Below are positions 4,601-26,780 of a DNA stretch of 40,903 nt, in pieces (position 1 is the first letter of the stretch; each line of letters opens with the position of its first letter). The stretch covers positions 1 through 40,903 of the forward strand of contig NIVC01003138.1 of assembly GCA_002269645.1 (NCBI GenBank). The letters are read 5' to 3'. The translations under genes and the position numbers were made by a program. This DNA is from Macrostomum lignano (taxonomy: Eukaryota). Under the pieces are notes generated by a model, which did no database searches, was not told the DNA's origin, and saw nothing but the letters and a program-made list of their open reading frames with translations.

Positions 4601-7600
4601 ATTGTTGGTGTGGCATGGGAATAATTCATGTGGGTTGGGGATTGTTGGTGGGGCATGGGGATAATCCATGTGGGTTGCATATTGTTAGCGGGGCATGGGG
4701 ATAATCCATGTGGGTTGGAGATTGTTGGTGTGGCATGGGGATAATCCATGTGGGTTGGGGATTGTTGGTGGGGCATGGGGATAATCCATGTGGTTTGGGG
4801 ATTGTTAGCGGGCATGGGGATAATACATGTGGTTTGGGGATTGTTAGCGGGGCATGGGGATAATCCATGTGGGTTGGAGATTGTTGGGGCATGGGGATAA
4901 TCCATGTGGTTTGGGGATTGTTAGCGGGGCATGGGATAATACATGTGGGTTGGGGAGTTTTTGAGGGGCATGGGGATAATCCATGTGGGTTGGGGATTGT
5001 TGGTGGGGCATGGGGATAATCCATGTGGGTTGGGGATTGTTGGTGGGGCATGGGGATAATCCATGTGGATTGGGGATTGTTAGCGGGGCATGGGGATAAT
5101 CCATGTGGGTTGGGGATTGTTGGTGGGGCATGGGGATAATCCATGTGGATTGGGGATTGTTAGCGGGCATGGGGATAATCCATGTGGATTGGGGATTGTA
5201 AGCCAGGCATGGGGATAATCCATGTTTGCTTTGGATTCTTAGAGCTCTCCACGCCGACACCACTATTTTACAGCGACGCCGCCGTGATGTCGTTCGGCTG
5301 CATCCTGGAGGGCCCGGACCCCGACAACCTGCGCAGCCTGGTTGAGAACGCCCTGCCCGTCATCATCGAGCTGCTGCGCGATCCGTCAAATGTTGTCCGC
5401 GACACCTCGGCCTGGACCATCGGCCGCGTGCTGGACACCCTGCCTGGCCTGGTGGTGCAGGAGAAGTTCCTCAACCCGCTGCTGCACGGCCTGGTGGAGG
5501 GCCTCGGAGCCGAGCCGCGGGTGGCTGCCAACGTCTGCTGGGCCTTCAGCAGCCTCGCCTCCGCCGCCTACGACCAGGCAGTCAGCCAGGTGAAGCGGCC
5601 CTGCTTGACTGAACCTCATTGTTTGCCACAATTCTCCCTCTGAATCTCACAGTTTGCCACAAATCTCCCCTGAATCTCACTGTTTGCCACAAATCTCCCC
5701 CTGAATCTCACAGTTTGCCACAAACGCCACCTGAATCTCACTGTTTGCCACAAACGCCACCTGAATCTCACTGTTTGCCACAAACGCCACCTGAATCTCA
5801 CTGTTTGCCACAAACGCCACCTGAATCTCACTGTTTGCCACAAACGCCACCTGAATCTCACTGTTTGCCACAAACGCCACCTGAATCTCACTGTTTGCCA
5901 CAAACGCCACCTGAATCTCACCACCAGGCCGGCACGTCGGACAACCGCAGCGCCCAGGTGGAGACCTACTGCCTGAGCGGCTTCTTCGAGCCGATCGTCG
6001 GCAAGCTGCTGGAGACGACGGACCGGCAGGAGGCAGGGCAGCACAACCTGCGCAACGCGGCCTACCACGCGCTGATGGAGATGCTGAAGCACTCGCCCAG
6101 GGACTGCTACGCCACCCTGCAGAAAACCACGCTTATTGTGATGCAGCGGCTCAAGAGCATTCAGGCAAGGCCAGCGAACATGATTAGCCCAGTGGCGGAT
6201 CTAGAGTTTCATTTTGGGGGGGCGGTCCAAGTTTGGGGCGCCAACACGAGTGTAAGGGGCGCCAATTTTTAAGCTAGGGGGCGCAAAAAATGCTTTTGGG
6301 GCGAAAAATCAAGCTTAGGGGCGCAAAAAAGGCGTTTGGGGGCAAAGAATCAAGTTTAGGGGGCACAATATGTTCGGTCAAGCTATTATTGGGGGGGGGG
6401 CGGTCGCCCCCCCCCCCTAAATCCGCCCCTGAGTATGCTGTGTTGCCCGTTGCAAACGTTATTGTGCCAGCAGTCGCTAAAGAGTCATTGCAAACTAACC
6501 ACTGACTCTAGCGACTCTGGTACGACTCGTGTGACTTTCCAACGACTCAAACGACTGGTAATATGATGGAGATGCGACTGTTGAGTCAGGAGCGCATCAA
6601 CGTGCTGAACTTTCTACTAACTCAAGTAGAATAAATAGAGTTGTTCATTAAGTGCCGCAGATGCGCTTTAGACACAATTCAGTGATTCTACGGCGACTCT
6701 GGCTCGCCTCAGATACGACTCCACGGCCCCAGAGTCATTACAACAGTATCGCCCCAGAGTCACTTGCGTCGCCATGACGACTTTTTGGCTCTTTTTACCG
6801 TGACGTTTTAGAGTCGTCAAGAGTCACTTCTTTTCTATTCACCCGCAACGATTCTGAAAGGACTCTGGCGAAGCAGGTGACCCTGGCAAATTTCTTGGCC
6901 TAGTTACCGTTTGCATCGGGTTGACTGGGTTCTGGGGAAAACAATTTCGCCGCGCTGCAAGTCCCAAACTGAGTGTTAGTCTGTTAAATTAAAATCGACT
7001 TGCATGTCGGAGTTTGTCTACTGATACGAGGTGAGTAGCAAGTATAGAGCGTGGCGCAAAAATCTTGCATGGCGGACAAAAAATTCTGTTCAGTCTAGCT
7101 AATGCTTGAAATTGGAATCTATATTAGGACAGAAAATGGTCCTGGCAGTGTCAACCGGGTTCGACTCCACTTTTGGCACACGGATAAACTTATTCAGCTT
7201 GAACCCAATCACCAACTACTTCAAGTAGCCAATCCAGTAGCAGCTATAAATATCATTGAATTGTGATTTTTCTCCAACCATCCGTATAGGACGTGGCCGA
7301 CAAGCTGCAGACCTCGCACGACCGGGCCCAGCTGAACGAGCTGCAGAGCATGCTGTGCGCCACCCTGCAGTCCGTGCTGCACAAGATCGACCGCAACGAT
7401 GCGCCCAACATTGCCGACGCTGTCATGGAGCTGCTGCTCCGGATGCTCACCCAGCAGCAGGTGCAGCAGCACCAGCCCGCCGACGATGAGGCTGAGCAGC
7501 AGAGCGGCGTGCAGGAGGACGCCCTGCTGGCCATGGCCGCCCTGGTGGACTGCCTTGGCGAGGACTTCATCAAGTACATGGAGGTCTTCAAGCCGGTGCT

Positions 7601-16668: not shown

Positions 16669-19600
16669 TCACTCTGAAACGGCGCTTGGTCGACTCATCG
16701 GACAGATTTTTGGTCGCTTCATCCAGCAGATGCACGCGCACTTCCTCCTCTGGCTTGCGGTCACCTCCGGCTGGGGTTGCACTTTTGCAGACAACTTCTT
16801 GGCGGCTGTGTTTAGCCTGAGCGAGGCCAGCTGGGCCATGTTGATGACGAGCTCCAGCATCTCCGTCAGAGTGATGACTGAAACTCCGATCCACAGGCCT
16901 GCACAGGTGCAATGAAGTGACAGACTGTTGAAACCAACAAATCGCAGGGCATATCTTTACAACTAACCACCACAAATACTAAAAGGTGTCTATTCCGGTA
17001 GCAGCAGAATGCATGGATGTTACTTAACAAATGTTTTACGTCATCGAAATTTTTCAACGCCTGAAAACTGACGTGAAATTTCGATTTTATTTATTTAGGG
17101 GTCGATAGAGTTGCGCAATAGTTTGCTTTGGTGGATGCCCTAACCCCGTAAAATCCAATTGACTGCAACTCACCGAGAATGCCGCCAAAGTCGGAGAACA
17201 GATTCCGCAGCGGGTAGGCGAACGACTCGGTGAAGACGCTGGCCTGGGTGGACGCTGGATACACGTCCAGCACGCTGATGAAGTCCCTGGACGATGCCAG
17301 GTTTTGAGCGGTCAGGTTGACCACGGCTTGGCTGAGCGAAGCGTAGGTAAAGTTTTGCAATACCTCCAATCTTAGTGTTCGCAGGCCAGTGCCCCTGACC
17401 CGGGCGAGGATTTTGCTTGTGTAGCTCTTCAGGATTTCAATGGCTAGGGGCACGTCCTTTGGCCAGGAGGTCAGGGTGGCGACGGTTTTGTATTGCGTGT
17501 TACTGCAGCGGACTGGGCACTTGTCGACTCGAACGCCATCTGTTTTCTGCCTGCTCTCGACTCGGTGATAGCAGTCAACCAGCTTCTTGGTGTTGTTGAA
17601 CCAGTGCCAGTGATTCAGAACGTAGTCTGCGAGCGGCTCAATCCTAGAATTATTGAGCTTAATGATGTATTCCGTCATGTTGAACTTGTTCAGACGATGT
17701 TCTTGGTACTTTAGCAAATACTGTGAATAGAATTGGTCACACCGTAGCGCTGATTAGCAAATAATTTCACTTGGCAAAAGCGATTGAGCCTGAAGGAAAG
17801 CAAACGCTATGAACTCTCACATACCACCACATTTTACGAGCTACTTGCTTAATGCCAGATTTCATTCCCAGGAAAATTCTTCCTAGCCTCTGCTCGTAAA
17901 AAGTCAAGCAAGGTCTTGGGAAGTTCTATCCGGTCTCTGTCAAGACCTGAGCAACTGCTTAGAAGCAGATGTGCACATCCGGCTTTTGTTTTGATGAAGA
18001 GTAGCGAACGATGCCATGGCTAACGGTAGCAGTGACTAACGATGCTATGGCTAACGGTAGTAGTGACTAACGATCCCATAGCTAACGGTAGCAGTGACTA
18101 ACGATGCTGTGGCTAACGGTAGCAGTGACTAACGATGCCATAGCCTACGGTAGCAGTGACTAACGATGCTATGGCTAACGGTAGCAGTGACTAACGATGC
18201 CATAGCCTACGGTAGCAGTGACTAACGATGCCATGGCTAACGGTAGCAGTGACTAACGATGCCATGGCTAACGGTAGCAGTGACTAACGATGCTATGGCT
18301 AACGGTAGCAGTGACTAACGATGCTATGGCTAACGGTAGCAGTGACTAACGATGCCATGACTAACGGTAGCAGTGACTAACGATGCCATAGCTAACGGTA
18401 GCAGTGACTAACGATGCTATGGCTAACGGTAGCAGTGACTAACGATGCTATGGCTAACGGTAGCAGTGACTAACGATGCCATGACTAACGGTAGCAGTGA
18501 CTAACGATGCTATGGCTAACGGTAGCAGTGACTAACGATGCCATGGCTAACGGTAGCGTTAGTTTTTTGGTAGCATTTCTAACGTTACAATGGCTAGTGA
18601 CAGATAATCAAACTACCTGCATCGTCACTGCCATTGTCACTTACCGCTTGCCACTGTTGTGTCGCTGCTACTCAATTTTCTCGCCAACAGTCAGCTAAGA
18701 GTCTGCTTCCTTCCTGGCTAATTATCGCCGGTACATCTGATTGCGGTCTGGTTAATCAAGCTCTCCTCCTGTTTCTCTCCGCTCCTGAGCTACTGACTGG
18801 GGACCGAGGGTGTCACCGAGCCTTTGACCCTTATGAAGCTGCGACACCAAGCTTCCTAGAGTATTGCCATAGCTAGTGCTGGCAGTGGCTCATGGTGTAG
18901 TTGGCTTGGGATGTGGCCAACAGCACCAATGGCTATTTGTATTATCCACAATTTATGTATATTCAAGTGACAGCCGTTGCTGGATGGCAATTTTTGCCAG
19001 CAACCGCTTTTGAACATGTACCTCTTCCGGCAGGTCGTGACACATTTTCGTTCCATCCATGAGGTCGCTGGGCAGGGCCAGATTAGCGCTGAGGCAGCCG
19101 CACGTCTCCTTGAACTCCTCCTGCTTGAGCCGCGTTACGCAGTCCTCGGTGGTGCCGAAGAAGCTCTGGCTCTCCCAGTTTCCAGGCCACGAGTAGTCCA
19201 TCGTGTACGTGACGTTCGGCAGCTCATCGCTGCACGGCGAGCCTTTGCGGCTGACTTTGGTGACGGTCTCGGCCTTCACTTGCACGGAGGTCTTCTGGCC
19301 ATAAGGTGCGTTGAATCCCATGTTCAAGTCTGGCTTGAACCCTGCCGGTGTTTTGGAAAGATTTTTTCTCACCTGAAATCTTTCGAAATCTTGTTTTTCT
19401 CTGCACTCTGAGGGGAGAGTACTCGTAGGCTGAGGGGAGCGCACGGACACTCTGCACTCTGAGGGGAGAGTACTCGTAGGCTGAGGGGAGCGCACGGACA
19501 GTCTGCACTCTGAGGGGAGAGTACTCGTAGGCTGAGGGGAGCGCACGGACACTCTGCACTCTGAGGGGAGAGTACTCGTAGGCTGAGGGGAGCGCACGGA

Positions 19601-21107
19601 CACTCTGCACTCTGAGGGGAGAGTACTCGTAGGCTGAGGGAAGCGCACGGACAGTCTGCACTCTGAGGGGAGAGTACTCGTAGGCTGAGGGGAGCGCACG
19701 GACACTCTGCACTCTGAGGGGAGAGTACTCGTAGGCTGAGGGGAGCGCACGGACACTCTGCACTCTGAGGGGAGAGTACTCGTAGGCTGAGGGGAGCACA
19801 CGGACACCTGAGAACTGATACCGCATGCTCTTAATCTTTCTTCATAAGTTTTTCTTTTCGTGAACTCAGATTTTGACTCTGCATTGCTTATACGAGCGTA
19901 GTCTTGAATCTGTGCATATTTGCAAACTAGATGCTGTTACTGCATGAGGATCTGAGCAAGCAGCTCCTCACCGGCCTGATGGAGCACCACCCGAAAGCCG
20001 GGCATGTAGTCAACTTGCTGTTCGTAAGTGAGATAAGCACCTCCTCTCAGGTGAAGAACCAGGTAGAGCCCCTTGCCTTCGCCCACCTCGATGACTGTGT
20101 GATTCGACGGGTTGAAGGAGAAGCACCACCACCTGGAATGGAATTCGATCGAGGCTCATTTGATCCCCAATTTCTGTCCGATATTAAAGAAGTCCAATGT
20201 GGCAAGCATTTTGCAAGTACCTGTCCTCATCTTTATACTCGGTGAAGTTCTCAAAGGTGCAGTCCTCATTCTTGTACCTGCAGTAGATCACGGATTCGTA
20301 GGCCTGGGCGAACAGGTGACCGCGGTACACCATGGCTCGTATCGAGTTTTTTCCGTCCGGGTAGAACTCCACCGGATTCTTTGGCATTGAGGCGTTCCAG
20401 TCGGTCCGGTTGAGCAGAGAGAACAGGTAGGGAGAGCCTTTCATCATGGAAACCAAGCATTTATTCCACCCTGAGAGACAGGTACAACGTACGTGTGTTA
20501 CAAAAAGTAAATGTGACATCAAAGAGAGGCATTTCCCCCTGGTTTGGTTCCGTGTGCGGTCATGCGCATTAATTTCGGGCTTGTGAACAAAATATCGGCC
20601 GGGGCCAACCTCAAGCCGCGAACTGACGATTAGAAAGTCAAGACCGCTGTACACCCTGTGTGAGCATGTGTATGTGTGCGTGCCTGCGCATAGTACTGGC
20701 ACCTTTGTACATGCATGTGCTCCAGAGTCAGCAGAAAGTTGTGCTCTCTTCTCGAGTACCTGAAACAGAGTGGTTGCTGACTACGGCTGAGCACGCGTAG
20801 GCGAACATGTTGGTCGGGCAGATGGTCACAGACGGGAACTCGAAGTTCGCACCGTCTCTGGAGAACTCGGTGCTCACTGGGTAGCTCAGGTACCGCTGGA
20901 TGAGCTCTGCAAGGTTCAGGGAGAAGCCGACGAAGGCGCCCAGGATGGCCGGGCCCAGATGAAGCGGCGAAGCTGGGAGCCCTGCGTCAGGCGCACCAGG
21001 CCGTGCGCGGTGGTCTGCTGGGCGAAGGCGACGAGTGCCTTCTCGCGAAGCTGCCACATCAGGGAGCCGCCCGTCGGGGATTCCGTCTCTGAGTCACTCG
21101 ATGTCAT
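16669..21107 (-). CDS. DEG/ENaC (ASIC/FaNaC superfamily) amiloride-sensitive channel subunit. Exons 21107-20760, 20470-20221, 20132-19972, 19341-19022, 17720-17174, 16898-~16669; C-terminal tail unresolved
   Basis: HG motif FAQQTTAHG, TM1 (IW(AL)AILGAFVGFSLNL), RYLSYPV..FPSVTICPTN, WCFSFNP, GLYLVL, GFRVVLH, Cys-rich thumb (CGC, CPVRC) and TM2 SDFGGILGLWIGVSVITLTEMLEL. Splice phases are consistent. One base-loss frameshift at ~20950. Confidence 0.9.
18005..18557. repeat. 31-bp minisatellite (GCTAACGGTAGCAGTGACTAACGATGCCATG)n
   Basis: About 18 units in a DEG/ENaC intron. Confidence 0.97.
19401..19808. repeat. 51-bp minisatellite, 8 near-identical units
   Basis: CTGCACTCTGAGGGGAGAGTACTCGTAGGCTGAGGGGAGCGCACGGACACT, intronic. 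Confidence 0.97.
20628..20700 (+). repeat. SINE-core-related fragment in DEG/ENaC intron 1
   Basis: GATTAGAAAGTCAAGACCGCTGTACACCCTGTGTGAGC..TACTGGC. Confidence 0.55.
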
Positions 21108-21360: not shown

Positions 21361-21554
21361 TGGGAGTGCTTGTGGGAGTGCTTGTGGGAGTGCTTGTGGG
21401 AGTGCTTGTGGGAGTGCTAGTGGAAGTGCTAGTAGGAGTGCTTGTGGGAGTGCTTGTGGGAGTGCTAGTGGGAGTGCTTGTGGGAGTGCTAGCTAGTGGG
21501 AGTGCTTGTGGGAGTGCTTGTGGGAGTGCTTGTGGAAGTGCTTGTGGAAGTGCT
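21361..21554. repeat. 12-bp minisatellite (GGGAGTGCTTGT)n, left part
   Basis: Interrupted by the LINE. Confidence 0.95.
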
Positions 21555-21564
21555 GTTGTTGTTG

Positions 21565-24500
21565 TTAATTCCCGGCCGGGTTAATATCCGGGGGGCGGGT
21601 TTGCGCCCCTACCGCCTGGAGGAAGTGCAGTGCGCGCGGGCCGTCGTCGTGGAGGATGGCCAGCGTCGGGTTCTCGCCCAGAATTTGTCGTCTGGTCTCG
21701 GTCGTGGCGCGACATTCCAGGAGCAGGTGTTTGAGGTCCTCCGAGGCCTCCCCGCAGGCCGGGCAGGTGGCCTCCGGTTCCAGCCCGATGCGGTGCCGAT
21801 ACTGTCGGAGTATCGGGCAGTGGCCAGAGCGTAGTTGGGCTAGCAGGACTCTGTCCTTACGGTTCATGGAGGTTTGCTGTTTGGGTCGTCGGCCGTTGAT
21901 GCAGGTGCGGTGGGTGCTGCAGTGCTCGTTTGTCTCATACGATCGGATGAAGTCGTTGTGGGCCGTCGCCAGAATGGCAGAGCGTGCGCTGCGGTGATCC
22001 AGGGGTGCGTTGGTCTGATCAAGGGTGGCAGCAGCGCGGGCAGTGGCATCGGCGAGATCGTGCGACGAAGGTCGCAGTGGCCCGGGATCCATTGCAGGGT
22101 CACGTGATGGCCAGGCGGGAGGCGTCCCAAGATGCGCAGTATGTCGCAGCAGCAAGGGGAGAGCCGCGGGCTTGGGCCGCCTTTGAGGCAGCGGAGCAGG
22201 GCCTGGGAGTCGGTCGCGCAGCGCAGCTCGCGGTTTCCCGGCCACGGCAGTGCGTCAAAAGCTGCTTGGAGGCCGAGCCTAAGCGCGCATTCTTCCGCAC
22301 GGAAGGACGAGGTCAGGCTCCCCGCCGGAGCTCTCAGAAAGCGCGTCGACGAACCGCGGGTGTAGAGGACAGCTCCTGCTCCGCCGTTGGTGGTACCCCC
22401 TGCTGCCGACCCGTCCGTCCAGAGTTCCAGGTCAGCGGGGGGGAGCGACGCTAGGGTCTCCAGCGCCGCGGCCCTGCGAACATGCGGTGGGTCGTCGCGT
22501 GAGCACTTAACTATGAGGGCGTCTTGGATGTGAAAGCTGGTCGAGGATGACCACGGAGGCACCAGCTCGTTGTCGGTTTCGATTTGGAGCTCAGCCAGTC
22601 CGGCTCTGTGGGTCAGCTCTCTGGCACACCTGCGCCAACATCTGCGGAAGTTGCCGTTTCCGCCGTGAGCGCGGATGCGAGGAGTGACTTCTCTGTCAGC
22701 GATGTTGCGGAGCGGGGTGGCTTGGCGTTGGCGGAGCGTTTTGTCCAGGAGCGTCGCTGCCGCGGCCGCGGCCGCCGCACTGTGAGCCAGGGGTTGGAGT
22801 CCGGCTTCGATAAGGAGCGCGGCTGTTGGCGTAGATTTGCAGCATCCTGAGATGACACGGGCAGCCTCGTTGTGGGCAGATTCCACCAGTTGTCTGCAGG
22901 CGTCCGACGCGAAGTTTAACCAGGCTGCCGCGCCGTGAAGAGCAGCCGACTCAGCGTAGGTTCTGTAGAGTTGCGACAGGAGCCCAGGGTCCTGGCCCCA
23001 GTCACGCCCGGCTAGGCAGCGGAGAGCGTTGGTCCTCTTTTGGAGGTTTTGTTTTTGTACCGACGCATGGTGCCGGAACGTGAGCTGGGAGTCGAGGTGC
23101 ACGCCCAGGAGTCTTGGGTGAGGTTCGAACGGGGCCTGGACGTCGCCGAGCCTGATATTCGGTCTCGCTTTGCCATTTACCTCACGGGGATCGAGGGAGA
23201 AGAAGGAAACGACCGACTTGGACTTGTTGAGGTCCACCTTCCAGGTTTGGGACCAGGTAACAAGCCAATCGGCCGCTCTCTGCAGTCTCGACTCGCACTC
23301 TTTGAGGTTGTGGCCTTGGGCGCCGAAGGTGGTGTCGTCGGCGTAACCGACCGCCAGGACGTCTTCGGGGGCGTCGTCGAGCAGGTCGTCGATGTACACG
23401 TCCCAGAGCGTCGGGGCGAGAACGGATCCTTGCGGTAGGCCCTCGGTGAAGATTCGGACGCGGCTGCGGACCCCGTCCCAGGTGACGAGGGCACGGCGGT
23501 CGTTGATGAAGTTTTTAATCCACCGGTTCATACACGTGGGCGTCCCTTTTCTGTTTAGCTTGGCGATTTGGGCTTTACGCCACACGCGCTCGTACGCTCT
23601 GGAGAAGTCAGCTAAGAGTAGGGCGGTCCGCTTCGCTGGTTTCTGAGCTTGGAAGCCGTCGAAGATGTATTGGGTGACCGCCGTAATCTGCTCCTCAGTG
23701 GAGCGGTTCCGGCGGAATCCAGCTTGGGCTGCATTTAGCAGTTTATTCTCTTCCAGATGAAAGGCGAGGCCTTCGTTAACGAGCCGCTCGGCGATTTTAG
23801 CAGTACAAGAGAGAAGGCAGATAGGGCGGAAACTCGCCGTGATGCTGTGATCTTTTCCGGGTTTGGGGATCGGTCGAATGTCGCCCAGACGCCACGCAGC
23901 CGGGACTTCAGCGGTACGCCAGGAGATGTTGATGGCAAGCAGCATCAGCTCCAGGCCTTGGGTTGGCAGATTTTTGAGCATTAGGTTCGAAACGCCGTCG
24001 ATGCCCGGTGCCGATCTGCTGGGGATACCTCTGATGGCTCTGGTCAGAGCTTCCATCGGGAAGTCGGCGCACAGGCCCGTCCGGTGGTTTTGACAGCTGC
24101 AAATGTCCCGCACAGCTCTTCTGGATTCGTTTCGGATGTCTTTGTCGGCCGATTTGTCTTTCGGGATTTTGGCGACGTTGGCGTACTCTTGACAGAAAAG
24201 ATCGGCTTTCTGGCGGTTGGAGGTGGCGAAGCGGCCTTGTGGGTTTTGGATCGCCCCTGATGGGCGGGCGGCCGCGGTGCGGCCGTCGAGGACGCGGATG
24301 ATGCGCCACAGGTCAGTCGACTTGAGCTCGCTGGAGTTGTCGCTGATGAAGTCGCGCCACAGGGCTTCCTTGGCGTTGCGGATGGTGGCGGTGGCGTGCG
24401 CTGCCGCCTCCTGGAACGCCTGGGCGAGTTGGTCGTCGTTGGGGTTGGCTCGGAGGTCTTCAAGAGCCTGGCGCCTGGCTGCGCACGCTGCTTCAGCTTC

Positions 24501-26009
24501 TGGGCACCACCAAGCAATTGGGGCGCGGCGGGATCCCTGCGGTATCGCTTTGCGGGCCGCCTCCGTGATCGCGTCGGTGAGCTTGCTGGCAGCTCCAGTG
24601 GCAGTCTTTGGTGGTCTAGCGGTCCAGTTTTTAAGGCGCTCGCTGATGATAAGGCGGAATTTGTCCCAGTCTGCTTTGTGATAAGCCAAGCGAGTGTGCC
24701 TCTTTTTCCTGTCGTTTTTCACAGGGAGCGGGTTTAGGTTTATGACGTCAATAATGATGGGCAGGTGGTCAGATCCGATATGTTTGCCGGTGTTCCAATC
24801 TAGCTTGTCCTGCCAGCTGGCAGGGACGAAGGAGACCTCGGGGCTGCTGGTAGTGCCTCTGGCGTTGACTCTGGTCGGGCCGCCGTCGTTGAGGGCCACG
24901 TAATCATTGGTGGTGGCCCAGTCTTCGAAAGCGGAGCCTCGCTGGTCTTCGGAGTCGTAGTTATCCTCCCACATTCCGTGGTGTGCGTTTATGTCTCCGA
25001 GGATGAACACGTCCGGGCCGGTCGGGAGCCAGTCCGGGTCAAAGCCGTCAGGGCGCCCGTCGGCGGTTCGAACCGGCGGGAGGTAGAGGTTGATGATGTG
25101 AATTGGTCGAGGTAATCGTTTATCGTGGAGCGAGATGGCCGAGCCTTCAGCAGCAGTGCGGGTCACGTCTATATGCGGCAGACGGTACTCAGCGAAATCC
25201 ACACCTTCCTTAACAAGAAAGCAGACCCCTCCGTGGGGGGTGGCCGTTTCGTCGCCATCGCGGTTAATAGCGCGGTCCCTTCGGCCTGCAAGTTGCCAAC
25301 CGGGGAGGCGCGGGATCTGAGACGTGGGTGAAAGATTCGATTCCTGGATGCAGGCTATGTCCGCTTGGAGTTCTTCGAGGAAGCGGAGGAGTTCGAGGCG
25401 TCGAGCTCTGAGGCCGGCTGCATTGAGTTGAATGATGCGGAAGTTAGTGTTGTCTTTGTTTTTAACGTGCGGGGTTCCGTCGGTCGGATACGTGGCCATG
25501 TCTTCAGTCCGACGGTGGACCGGGGGAGGCGAGTTGGGCGGGCTAGGCGGGTCAGGCGGCGGCGTTGGGCTGTCCGTCTGTGCCGTCGGCTGACTGCAGT
25601 TTGTGCACCGCCAGGGTCTCCGGTCACGTCCGATGGTGTTGATTTCGGCTATGCTAAGGTTGCTGCAGCGACGGTGCCGCCAGCGAAGACAGGAGGAGCA
25701 GCGAGTGGAGTAGTCTTTGCGGGTGACATTCTGATTGCAGGCTCCGCACGGGAAGGTTGGTCCTGGGTTTTGTTCGATGTCTCCAGCCCGGATAAGAAGC
25801 TGACCGAGGTGGGCTGGTGAGCCAGGGCCAGCTTGGAAAAAGACGACCGACGCGGTAATGACGCGCCGAATGCGCGCTCTGCACTCTTCCCAGGGTCCGG
25901 GGTGTTGCTGCACTTTGCTGGGCGGGCGCCCAGTCGGTCCCACCACGAGAAGGTGGCAGCATTGGGAGGCGCGCCAGGCGCGCCCGGTAGTGGGTTGCCC
26001 CACCACCAC
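21565..26009 (-). CDS. LINE polyprotein (~1480 aa after repairing one frameshift at ~22060): 2A - PHD - APE endonuclease - reverse transcriptase - RNase H - CCHC knuckle
   Basis: APE: IIQLNAAG, CIQES, YLPP, GDINAH, SDHLPI. RT: FRPICLLS, QAGFR, GLPQGSVLAP, YADD. RNase H: WTDGS, RAE, TDSQ, WIPGH..(N)DLAD. Knuckle CPACGEASEDLKHLLLEC. Confidence 0.92.
25596..25748 (-). other. PHD finger coding segment in the LINE ORF
   Basis: CGAC..CSSC..HRRC..WRCTNC gives C4HC3 spacing with the conserved Trp before the last Cys pair. Confidence 0.85.
25758..25799 (-). other. 2A-like (StopGo) ribosomal skipping peptide LLIRAGDIEQNPG/P
   Basis: Exact D(V/I)ExNPGP consensus with upstream hydrophobic LLI, in frame with the RT ORF. 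Confidence 0.88.
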
Positions 26010-26010
26010 C
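25906..26010 (-). ncRNA. HDV-like self-cleaving ribozyme at the LINE 5' end
   Basis: P3 ACC/GGU, L3 UUCUCGU, P1.1 UC/GA, P4 CUGGGC/GCCCAG, J4/2 CAAA, P2 UGCUGC-C/G-(U)-GCAGCA. P1 GGU+CCC/GGGACC is interrupted by two hairpins. Confidence 0.8.
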
Positions 26011-26780
26011 AAGTGCTTGTGGGAATGCTTGTGGGAGTGCTTGTGGGAGTGCTAGCTAGTGGAAGTGCTTGTGGGAGTGCTTGTGAGAGTGCTTGTGGAA
26101 GTGCTTGTGGGAGTGCTTGTGGGAGTGCTAGTGGGAGTGCTTGTGGGAGTGCTTGTGAGAGTGCTTGTGGGAGTGCTTGTGGGAGTTCTTGTGGGAGTGC
26201 TAGTGGGAGTGCTAGTGGAAGTGCTTGTGGGAGTGCTTGTGGGAGTTCTTGTGGGATTGCTAGTGGGAGTGCTAGTGGAAGTGCTTGTGGGAATGCTTGT
26301 GGGAGTGCTTGTGGGAGTGCTAGTGGGAGTGCTAGTGGAAGTGCTTGTGGGAGTTCTTGTGGGAGTGCTAGTGGGAGTGCTAGTGGGAGTGCTTGTGGGA
26401 GTGCTAGTGGAAGTGCTAGTGGAAGTGCTTGTGGGAGTGCTTGTGGGAGTGCTTGTGAGTGCTAGTGGGAGTGCTTGTGGGAGTGCTTGTGGGAGTGCTT
26501 GTGGGAGTGCTAGTGGGAGTGCTAGTGGAAGTGCTTGTGGGAATGCTTGTGGAAGTGCTTGTGGGAGTGCTAATGGAAGTGCTTGTGGGAGTGCTTGTGG
26601 GAGTGCTTGTGGGAGTGCTAGTGGGAGTGCTTGTGGAAGTGCTTGTGGGAGTGCTAGTGGGAGTGCTTGTGGGAGTGCTTGTGGGAGTGCTAGTTGGGGT
26701 GCTACTGGGAGTGCTTGTGGGAGTGCTAGTTGGAGTGCTACTGGGAGTGCTATTGGAAGTGCTAGCGGGAGTGCTAGTAA
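26011..26780. repeat. 12-bp minisatellite (GGGAGTGCTTGT/GGGAGTGCTAGT)n, right part
   Basis: About 64 units continuing the array beyond the LINE. Confidence 0.97.

Follow-up and report, generated by a model that had tools for sequence, protein, structure and literature searches.

Self-cleaving ribozymes resembling that of the hepatitis delta virus (HDV) define the 5′ ends of R2, L1Tc, Baggins and RTE elements (PMC3185411, PMC3774820, PMC6765202). Their helix P1 is described as a helix of 6 to 7 base pairs (bp) formed from a contiguous segment of ~7 nucleotides (nt), and peripheral elaborations have been described only in P4 and in J1/2, where drz-Agam-2 has helix P1.2 and R2 up to hundreds of nt (PMC3774820, PMC4908430). 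We analysed a stretch of 40,903 nt from Macrostomum lignano (assembly GCA_002269645.1, contig NIVC01003138.1, positions 1 to 40,903 of the forward strand), hereafter called the window, which contains a complete non-LTR retrotransposon (one lacking long terminal repeats, LTRs) of 4,457 bp on its minus strand (21554..26010). The first 105 nt of this element (26010→25906) form a ribozyme-like fold, and the comparisons reported below support a structure in which two hairpins interrupt the 5′ strand of P1 between bp 3 and 4, the two halves of P1 and the two hairpins forming a four-way junction. We regard it as a variant of the known ribozyme class, and not as a new class. The initial annotation of this DNA had proposed a new topology, and the insertion indeed lies outside the two positions of elaboration mentioned above. 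Full-text literature searches, of incomplete coverage and thus giving absence of evidence only, found no natural HDV-like ribozyme with a four-way junction or an insertion in P1.

In what follows, nt n is window position 26011-n on the minus strand, and the element begins with G1 (26010). In the P1 5′ strand, the half next to the cleavage site is P1a (nt 1-3, GGU, 26008..26010), which pairs with A73C74C75, and the distal half is P1b (nt 45-47, CCC, 25964..25966), which pairs with G70-G72. The P1 3′ strand GGGACC (nt 70-75, 25936..25941), directly after P3, is thus complementary to both. The insert consists of hairpin 1 (nt 4-25, 9 bp, GCAA loop, 25986..26007) and hairpin 2 (nt 26-44, 8 bp including a G26.U44 closing pair, CUG loop, 25967..25985). 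Next come J1/2 (A48 A49, 25962..25963) and the P2 5′ strand (nt 50-56, 25955..25961), which pairs as 50-55/100-105, plus C56-G98, with a 3′ strand in which U99 is bulged (nt 98-105, 25906..25913). P3 (57-59/67-69) closes L3, UUCUCGU (60-66), both within 25942..25954, and L3 forms the two pairs of P1.1, C62-G76 and U61-A77, with the P1.1 3′ strand (25934..25935). The P4 hairpin (78-83/88-93, GCCC loop, 25918..25933) is followed by J4/2, CAAA (25914..25917), whose first base, C94 (25917), is by analogy with the HDV ribozyme the candidate catalytic residue.

Direct reading recovered every pairing that had been listed for this segment, and an unconstrained ViennaRNA minimum free energy fold gave both hairpins, P2, P3 and P4 (-56.6 kcal/mol, z = -2.4). 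P1 cannot be predicted by this program because it crosses P2 as a pseudoknot; evaluated over the hairpins alone, P1 adds -4.7 kcal/mol and P2 -7.3 kcal/mol. Compared with what is expected of HDV-like ribozymes, the segment has a P1 of the right length (6 bp here, 7 bp in the other clades described below, for an expected 6-7 bp) with its 3′ strand abutting P3, a P1/P2 pseudoknot, a 3-bp P3 closing a ~7-nt L3, and P1.1. It departs from them in the P1 5′ strand, which is not contiguous but split 3+3 or 3+4 by two hairpins. Contiguity of this strand is conventional in descriptors; it is not among the stated requirements for catalysis.

With segments of just 3 nt each in a GC-rich sequence, the split P1 could have been chance complementarity beside two GC-rich palindromes, leaving only nt 48-105 as the remnant of a ribozyme. 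Of 200,000 shuffles of nt 1-47, 0.29% made the two P1 segments complementary at their fixed positions, and 0.0135% did so while leaving no base of the junction unpaired. Furthermore, 11-12 families have this pairing, in four sequence types, and the covariation count given below practically refutes a chance origin, which we find hardly conceivable. The observation is real and far beyond chance. Two other readings of the segment were rejected. The register that uses the flanking base U(-1), UGG...UCCC/GGGACCG, was discarded because base -1 varies between copies, and a tRNA-like reading of the cloverleaf-shaped junction found no match with ARAGORN. As an aside on base -1 (window 26011), five of the six independent sites of families A/B have T there, and in the window copy U(-1) could lengthen P1 via G76, in competition with P1.1. 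A flank effect of comparable kind has been reported for L1Tc (PMC3185411).

As had been foreseen, standard models miss a P1 of this kind. No Rfam match reached its gathering score anywhere in the window, the HDV families RF00094, RF00622, RF01787, RF01788 and RF02682 included. At a relaxed threshold (E ≤ 10) the sole match was to RF02682, with 14.6 bits against a gathering score of 44 and E = 3.9. Its alignment spans nt 41-105 and forces an incorrect, gapped 4-bp P1, placed at nt 41-47. Taken at face value, this cmscan alignment would favour an active ribozyme with a short contiguous P1 (U44-C47 with G70-A73) that cuts near nt 43/44, nt 1-43 being a discarded leader. This is very improbable: beyond the poor score, the P1 so aligned contains gaps and non-pairs, and 4 bp are under the known 6-7 bp (PMC4908430, PMC3774820). 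Moreover, full-length genomic copies begin at nt 1 and not at nt 44/45 (15/15 sites, see below), and the P1 3′ strand covaries, at its 3′ end, with nt 1-3.

Relatives of the element were collected from the same genome, in its 764-Mb assembly. A DNA search yielded seven further copies of 96-100% identity at other sites (family A) and a second family, B, at 82% (one full-length copy and one 5′-truncated). A protein search brought in family C, at 52-61% amino-acid identity, and a large number of remoter families. A covariance model of the core, run on the fetched loci, placed the ribozyme in every A, B and C locus; for the remoter families, the 5′ regions of elements at 30-37% identity were fetched and read. 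The split layout was found in 11-12 families of this one genome (A, B, C, G, H, I, J, K, L, M, N and Q), always as 3 nt, two hairpins and 3-4 nt, the two segments pairing with the 6-7 nt that follow P3. The split always comes after the third nucleotide, and the insert measures 34-49 nt. Four P1 sequence types are used: GGU / two hairpins / CCC against GGGACC (families A, B, C), CCG / two hairpins / GGUC against GACCCGG (G, H, I, Q), CCC / two hairpins / CUCC against GGAGGGG (J, K, M), and CCC / two hairpins / CCCC against GGGGGGG (L, N). All P1 pairs are Watson-Crick bar one U.G. No hairpin-bearing family offers a normal contiguous P1. An automatic parser found the split layout in the split families and in no contiguous-P1 family, after spurious parses (L007/L012, L026, L058 and L068) had been set aside by eye, and the segment tables, one flank excepted, were confirmed as substrings of the loci.

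Nucleotides 1-44 are thus retained in other copies and in diverged families, as structure and not as sequence. The hairpins of different split families are unrelated in sequence, as hairpin 1 illustrates: GGUGGUGGG-GCAA-CCCACUACC in family A, GGUGG-GUCAAA-CCGCC in family B and CGGGAGG-UUCCG-CCUCCCG in family C. The GCAA tetraloop that had drawn attention in the window is really there, but it is incidental: the sister subfamily has GCAC there, and family B a loop of 6 nt. The sister subfamily also has C.A in place of U50-A105. Hairpin 2 shows a compensatory exchange of G-C for A-U in families B and C, in which P3 changes A-U for G-C and P4 carries compensatory changes as well. The outer P2 pair also changes, U-A for G-C. 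In one copy, L016, GGGGCC replaces GGGACC and preserves a U3.G73 pair. A junction without any unpaired base, also claimed for the window, is correct there and typical elsewhere, but not universal, the junction closing pairs of families H and L being weak or mismatched. Separately, P4 is essentially absent from three split-P1 loci (L050 and L052 of family G, L046 of family Q), with 12 nt between the P1 3′ and P2 3′ strands; some R2 ribozymes likewise are nearly without P4 (PMC3774820). Among the copies collected, some have identical flanks (L003 = L004 = L005, L006 = L007, L021 = L022 = L028).

Covariation was measured on 15 distinct ribozymes, cut into fixed fields (P1a, five basal pairs per hairpin, P1b, five P2 pairs, P3-L3-P3 and the P1 3′ strand) and aligned gap-free, P1 being written as a pseudoknot. 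Standard pairs occupied 99.5% of the 369 cells, against 62.6% in shuffles and 35-48% in slid controls. Changes on both sides were seen in 23 of the 25 pairs, and the covariation score was 0.967 versus 0.245, none of the 500 shuffles attaining any of the observed measures. Both halves of the split P1 covary across families and are 100% paired, with three of three covarying pairs in P1a (GGU/ACC, CCG/CGG, CCC/GGG) and three of four in P1b (GGUC/GACC, CUCC/GGAG and CCCC/GGGG in the other clades). The basal pairs covary in hairpin 1 (5/5) and hairpin 2 (5/5), as do the counted P2 pairs (5/5) and two of three in P3. When split and contiguous ribozymes are taken together, the first P1.1 pair is standard in 23/23 (C-G, U-A, A-U or U.G) and a C(N)AA motif stands at J4/2 in 23/23; the L3 of the window fits the pattern U(U/C)NNCG(U/C) of all relatives. 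We conclude that every helix, both halves of P1 included, is supported by covariation.

The 5′ boundary of the elements was then compared with the first base of P1. GGT stands exactly at the start in all 15 independent A/B/C insertion sites, a single 5′-truncated copy (L010) beginning at ~nt 37. In a split-P1 copy of family C (L089), the target-site duplication (TSD) is a 12-bp ACCTGTCTTCCG, found immediately before G1 and again immediately after the (AAC)n tail. Clean TSDs likewise adjoin the first P1 base in the split families I (20 nt), G (13 nt), Q (16 nt) and K (at least 20 nt), and in the contiguous-P1 families D (12 nt) and R (11 nt). For the window copy, G1 had been described as the first base inside the TSD, and this holds; its TSD, GCACTT (5′ copy 26011..26016, 3′ copy 21553-21548), is only 6 bp long, a minimum-consistent reading, because the element sits inside a 12-mer minisatellite, (GCACTCCCACAA)n, and the boundary is clearer in the other copies. 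A boundary at the first base of P1 is what may be expected if the RNA that is reverse transcribed starts at the ribozyme cut, as it does in R2 and L1Tc (PMC3774820, PMC3185411). As to where the elements insert, most related families (L043-L068, L092-L105) have a (CAG)n or (CAA)n microsatellite immediately on their 5′ side; their own tails are (CAA)n, and repeat units make up their TSDs. These features point to insertion targeted to microsatellites or primed by tails, and to tandem arrays whose neighbouring members a 5′ ribozyme would part (L084 is an example from outside the genome).

The relatives compared were elements with 2A, PHD, APE and reverse transcriptase (RT) domains, from the same genome and from metagenome contigs. 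An ordinary HDV-like ribozyme with a contiguous 6-7-bp P1 was found at the same place in families D, E, F, O, R and S, and in the external contigs L081, L083, L084 and L229. Examples of this P1 are GUCGUC / GGCGGC in family D, followed by an AA linker and P2, CUCGUCC / GGAUGAG in family E, CCCACUC / GAGUGGG in family F, GGAGAGC / GCCCUCU in family R, with its classical G1.U wobble, GCCACC in L081, again followed by AA and P2, and GCGAUGC in a further relative. The AA linker of family D and contig L081 is the one found as J1/2 in the window. Since sister and external relatives have a contiguous P1 at the same place, the hairpins lie inside the homologous P1. Family O (L067/L102) is peculiar: its P1 (CCCGUCC/GGACGGG) and P2 are intact, and its P3-L3 region seems replaced or enlarged (CCUAAACAUAGGGAUACUCGGC), which would make it either a degenerate copy or a further variant.

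In a maximum-likelihood tree of APE+RT, the split families fell in three clades, each with a bootstrap of 100. The clade (A,(B,C)) is sister to a contiguous-P1 group (L081,(S,D)), the clade ((G,Q),(H,I)) to external contigs, one of them with a contiguous P1, and the clade (J,((L,N),(K,M))) to a contiguous-P1 group (E,(F,O)). Core motifs follow the protein tree, L3 UCUUCGY, J1/4 AG and J4/2 CGAA(G/C)A being common to the third clade and families E and F; therefore the cores were inherited vertically. Even the split P1 CCC/CUCC resembles the contiguous CCCGUCC and CCCACUC. Judging from this tree, either three gains of the hairpin pair took place, at the same position, or no fewer than four to five losses.

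Beyond this genome, the closest proteins in public collections were only 30-38% identical and came from metagenome contigs. Fifteen of these contigs were read: the four named above carry their contiguous-P1 HDV-like ribozyme ahead of the 2A, and the rest are truncated or unclear. A metagenome scan with the 14-mer GCCTCTTCGCGGCG returned at least 119 matches, essentially GC-rich chance, and none of them had a credible P1/P2 context.

Taken together, these results make it probable, on comparative evidence, that the first 105 nt of the retrotransposon are an active self-cleaving HDV-like ribozyme that stands at its 5′ end and cuts 5′ of G1. It may work as follows. The element would be transcribed within a longer upstream transcript; many copies lie in microsatellites or right behind another element's tail. 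Both local hairpins would fold first, bringing nt 1-3 beside nt 45-47, and nt 70-75, on emerging, would pair with both segments to give a coaxially stacked, effectively continuous P1. P2, P3, P1.1 and P4 would then finish the nested double pseudoknot, and the J4/2 cytosine C94 plus Mg2+ would catalyse scission 5′ of G1. The resulting RNA, with a 5′-OH and beginning at G1, would be the template for reverse transcription, and new copies would begin exactly at G1 because this template does.

The same 5′ end could also be produced by an internal promoter, the fold then being a relic or a re-purposed, non-cleaving HDV-like derivative that serves as an element of the 5′ untranslated region, for instance in cap-independent translation or as a platform binding the element's own protein. 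In favour of this reading, one stretch of 77 nt in L1Tc is both promoter and ribozyme, and its transcription start site coincides with its cleavage site (PMC3185411, PMC3383444); HDV-like ribozymes have been proposed to resemble internal ribosome entry sites, and the ribozyme of R2 contains an inserted structure to which the R2 protein binds (PMC6765202); interruptions of P1 are not known to be tolerated (PMC3774820). Translation of the window element also has to start in an unusual manner. A single long frame (26012-21864, minus strand) is open from the first base of the element, right through the ribozyme, and its open reading frame (ORF) has no in-frame Met before residue 172, yet the 2A motif DIEQNPGP occupies residues 78-85 (25781-25758, minus strand). 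Translation upstream of the 2A must therefore use a non-AUG codon, an internal start, or entry from an upstream frame. Family D differs in this respect, with an AUG 32 codons ahead of its 2A. Against a purely structural role, all three clades retain L3, the covarying P1.1, the C(N)AA of J4/2 and a P1 that is paired as far as nt 1, which a pure scaffold would not need. In particular, the pairing of the very first three nucleotides covaries, as a helix at the cleavage site requires, and many copies stand behind microsatellites or tails of other elements, where release from read-through transcripts would be useful. We consider a non-cleaving fold unlikely.

Several points weigh against active cleavage through a split P1. 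The fields used to count covariation were defined by structural position, which biases the counts towards the hairpins; the bias is far smaller for P1, whose segments are fixed by the element's 5′ end, the borders of the hairpins and the end of P3. P1 is invariant within families A-C, its covariation arising between clades. Tolerance of a junction within P1 has, to our knowledge, no precedent. The helices of a four-way junction can also stack in the other way, P1a on hairpin 1 and P1b on hairpin 2, and this would break P1. The conserved 5′ end is by itself no proof of cleavage, because of the shared start and cut site of L1Tc. The split form was seen in this single genome and in 0 of the 15 external contigs sampled. 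Finally, mismatches in P1 are reported to impair HDV-like ribozymes (PMC3774820).

A bolder proposal, drawn from the same comparisons, is that the split-P1 four-way junction is an active, unrecognised structural class, which arose or was repeatedly kept in three retrotransposon lineages of this genome, and that the hairpin insert is a functional module. This we put forward tentatively, as possible rather than probable. Such a module would be a clamp for folding, putting the substrate strand together in advance, or else a junction switch or protein platform coupling 5′ processing to translation or to assembly of the ribonucleoprotein.

Beyond its ribozyme, the element ORF encodes the 2A, a PHD-like zinc finger, an APE endonuclease, a reverse transcriptase and an RNase H (Pfam). 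Its 3′ tail is (AAC)4A (21566-21554, minus strand). The long ORF ends at 21864, and a C-terminal Cys-rich domain of the kind typical of retrotransposons (…CPACGE…LKHLLLEC…) runs on in another frame to ~21600 (21590-21870, minus strand); therefore the window copy has at least one frameshift near its 3′ end. The minisatellite interrupted by the insertion has ~64 + 16 units (26012-26775 and 21361-21554) and lies upstream of the apparent first exon of a DEG/ENaC-type channel gene. Fragments of host genes in the window encode an amiloride-sensitive sodium channel (PF00858) and an importin-beta-like TPR protein (PF25574), at 17091-17753 (minus strand), 20900-21100 (minus strand) and 5613-6272 (plus strand). 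Regarding the assembly itself, it is without a mitochondrial COX1 (only a 33-bit fragment with two in-frame stops was found), and HSP90 matches occur at more than 12 intron-poor loci, which may be uncollapsed haplotypes or true multi-copy genes.

The split form matters first for searches. Descriptors and covariance models assume a contiguous P1, and a split variant would broaden what is looked for in genomes; if the bolder proposal above is true, structure-based censuses of HDV-like ribozymes have systematically overlooked a class. From a conserved, covarying junction within P1 it would follow that the substrate helix can bear a topological interruption, and a new site for building aptamers or sensors into HDV-type ribozymes would suggest itself. 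It would also be a natural test case for the tuning of a fold by peripheral domains, extending the idea of a 'pinch' (PMC4908430). Finally, with the split form in three clades, each sister to the ordinary one, these elements offer a system in which convergent gain and repeated loss of RNA insertions can be compared.

One comparison is with the contiguous-P1 relatives, which share with the split families the 2A, PHD finger, APE and RT, usually the RNase H, an L3 of the form UUCNCGU or UCUUCGY, J1/2 AA, J4/2 C(N)AA, and an element start at the first base of P1; they differ in having no hairpins in P1. With the 5′ HDV-like ribozymes of R2, L1Tc/NARTc, Baggins, RTE, R4 and Dong, the window ribozyme has in common the nested double pseudoknot of P1, P1.1, P2, P3 and P4, a 7-nt L3, a cytosine in J4/2, a first P1 base that is also the first base of the element, and the presumed release of the element RNA from a co-transcript (PMC3185411, PMC3774820, PMC6765202). 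In those ribozymes, however, the P1 5′ strand is one run of ~6-7 nt, whereas here it is made of 3 + 3-4 nt. With the Pr77 ribozyme of the trypanosomatid L1Tc/ingi elements, the features in common are general ones: a 2A at the N-terminus, one ORF and an HDV-like ribozyme at the 5′ end (PMC3185411, PMC3708506). The 764-Mb host genome is not that of a trypanosomatid. With the hairpin ribozyme, whose natural form positions its helices by a four-way junction (PMC4908430), it shares self-cleavage, if the present interpretation is right, and the use of a junction as a scaffold, but fold and active site are unrelated. A further likeness is to drz-Agam-2 and the R2 ribozymes with a large J1/2, in which the strand leading from the cleavage site to P2 also carries a stable extra domain. 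In drz-Agam-2, this domain (helix P1.2) 'pinches' P1 and P2 and quickens cleavage almost 1000-fold (PMC4908430), and by analogy a similar stabilising role for the hairpin insert is plausible. The two are nevertheless not of one type: the drz-Agam-2 domain follows a complete P1, whereas the insert described here comes after bp 3, inside P1, with 3-4 P1 bp distal to it and a four-way junction, and is still followed by a normal short J1/2 (AA).

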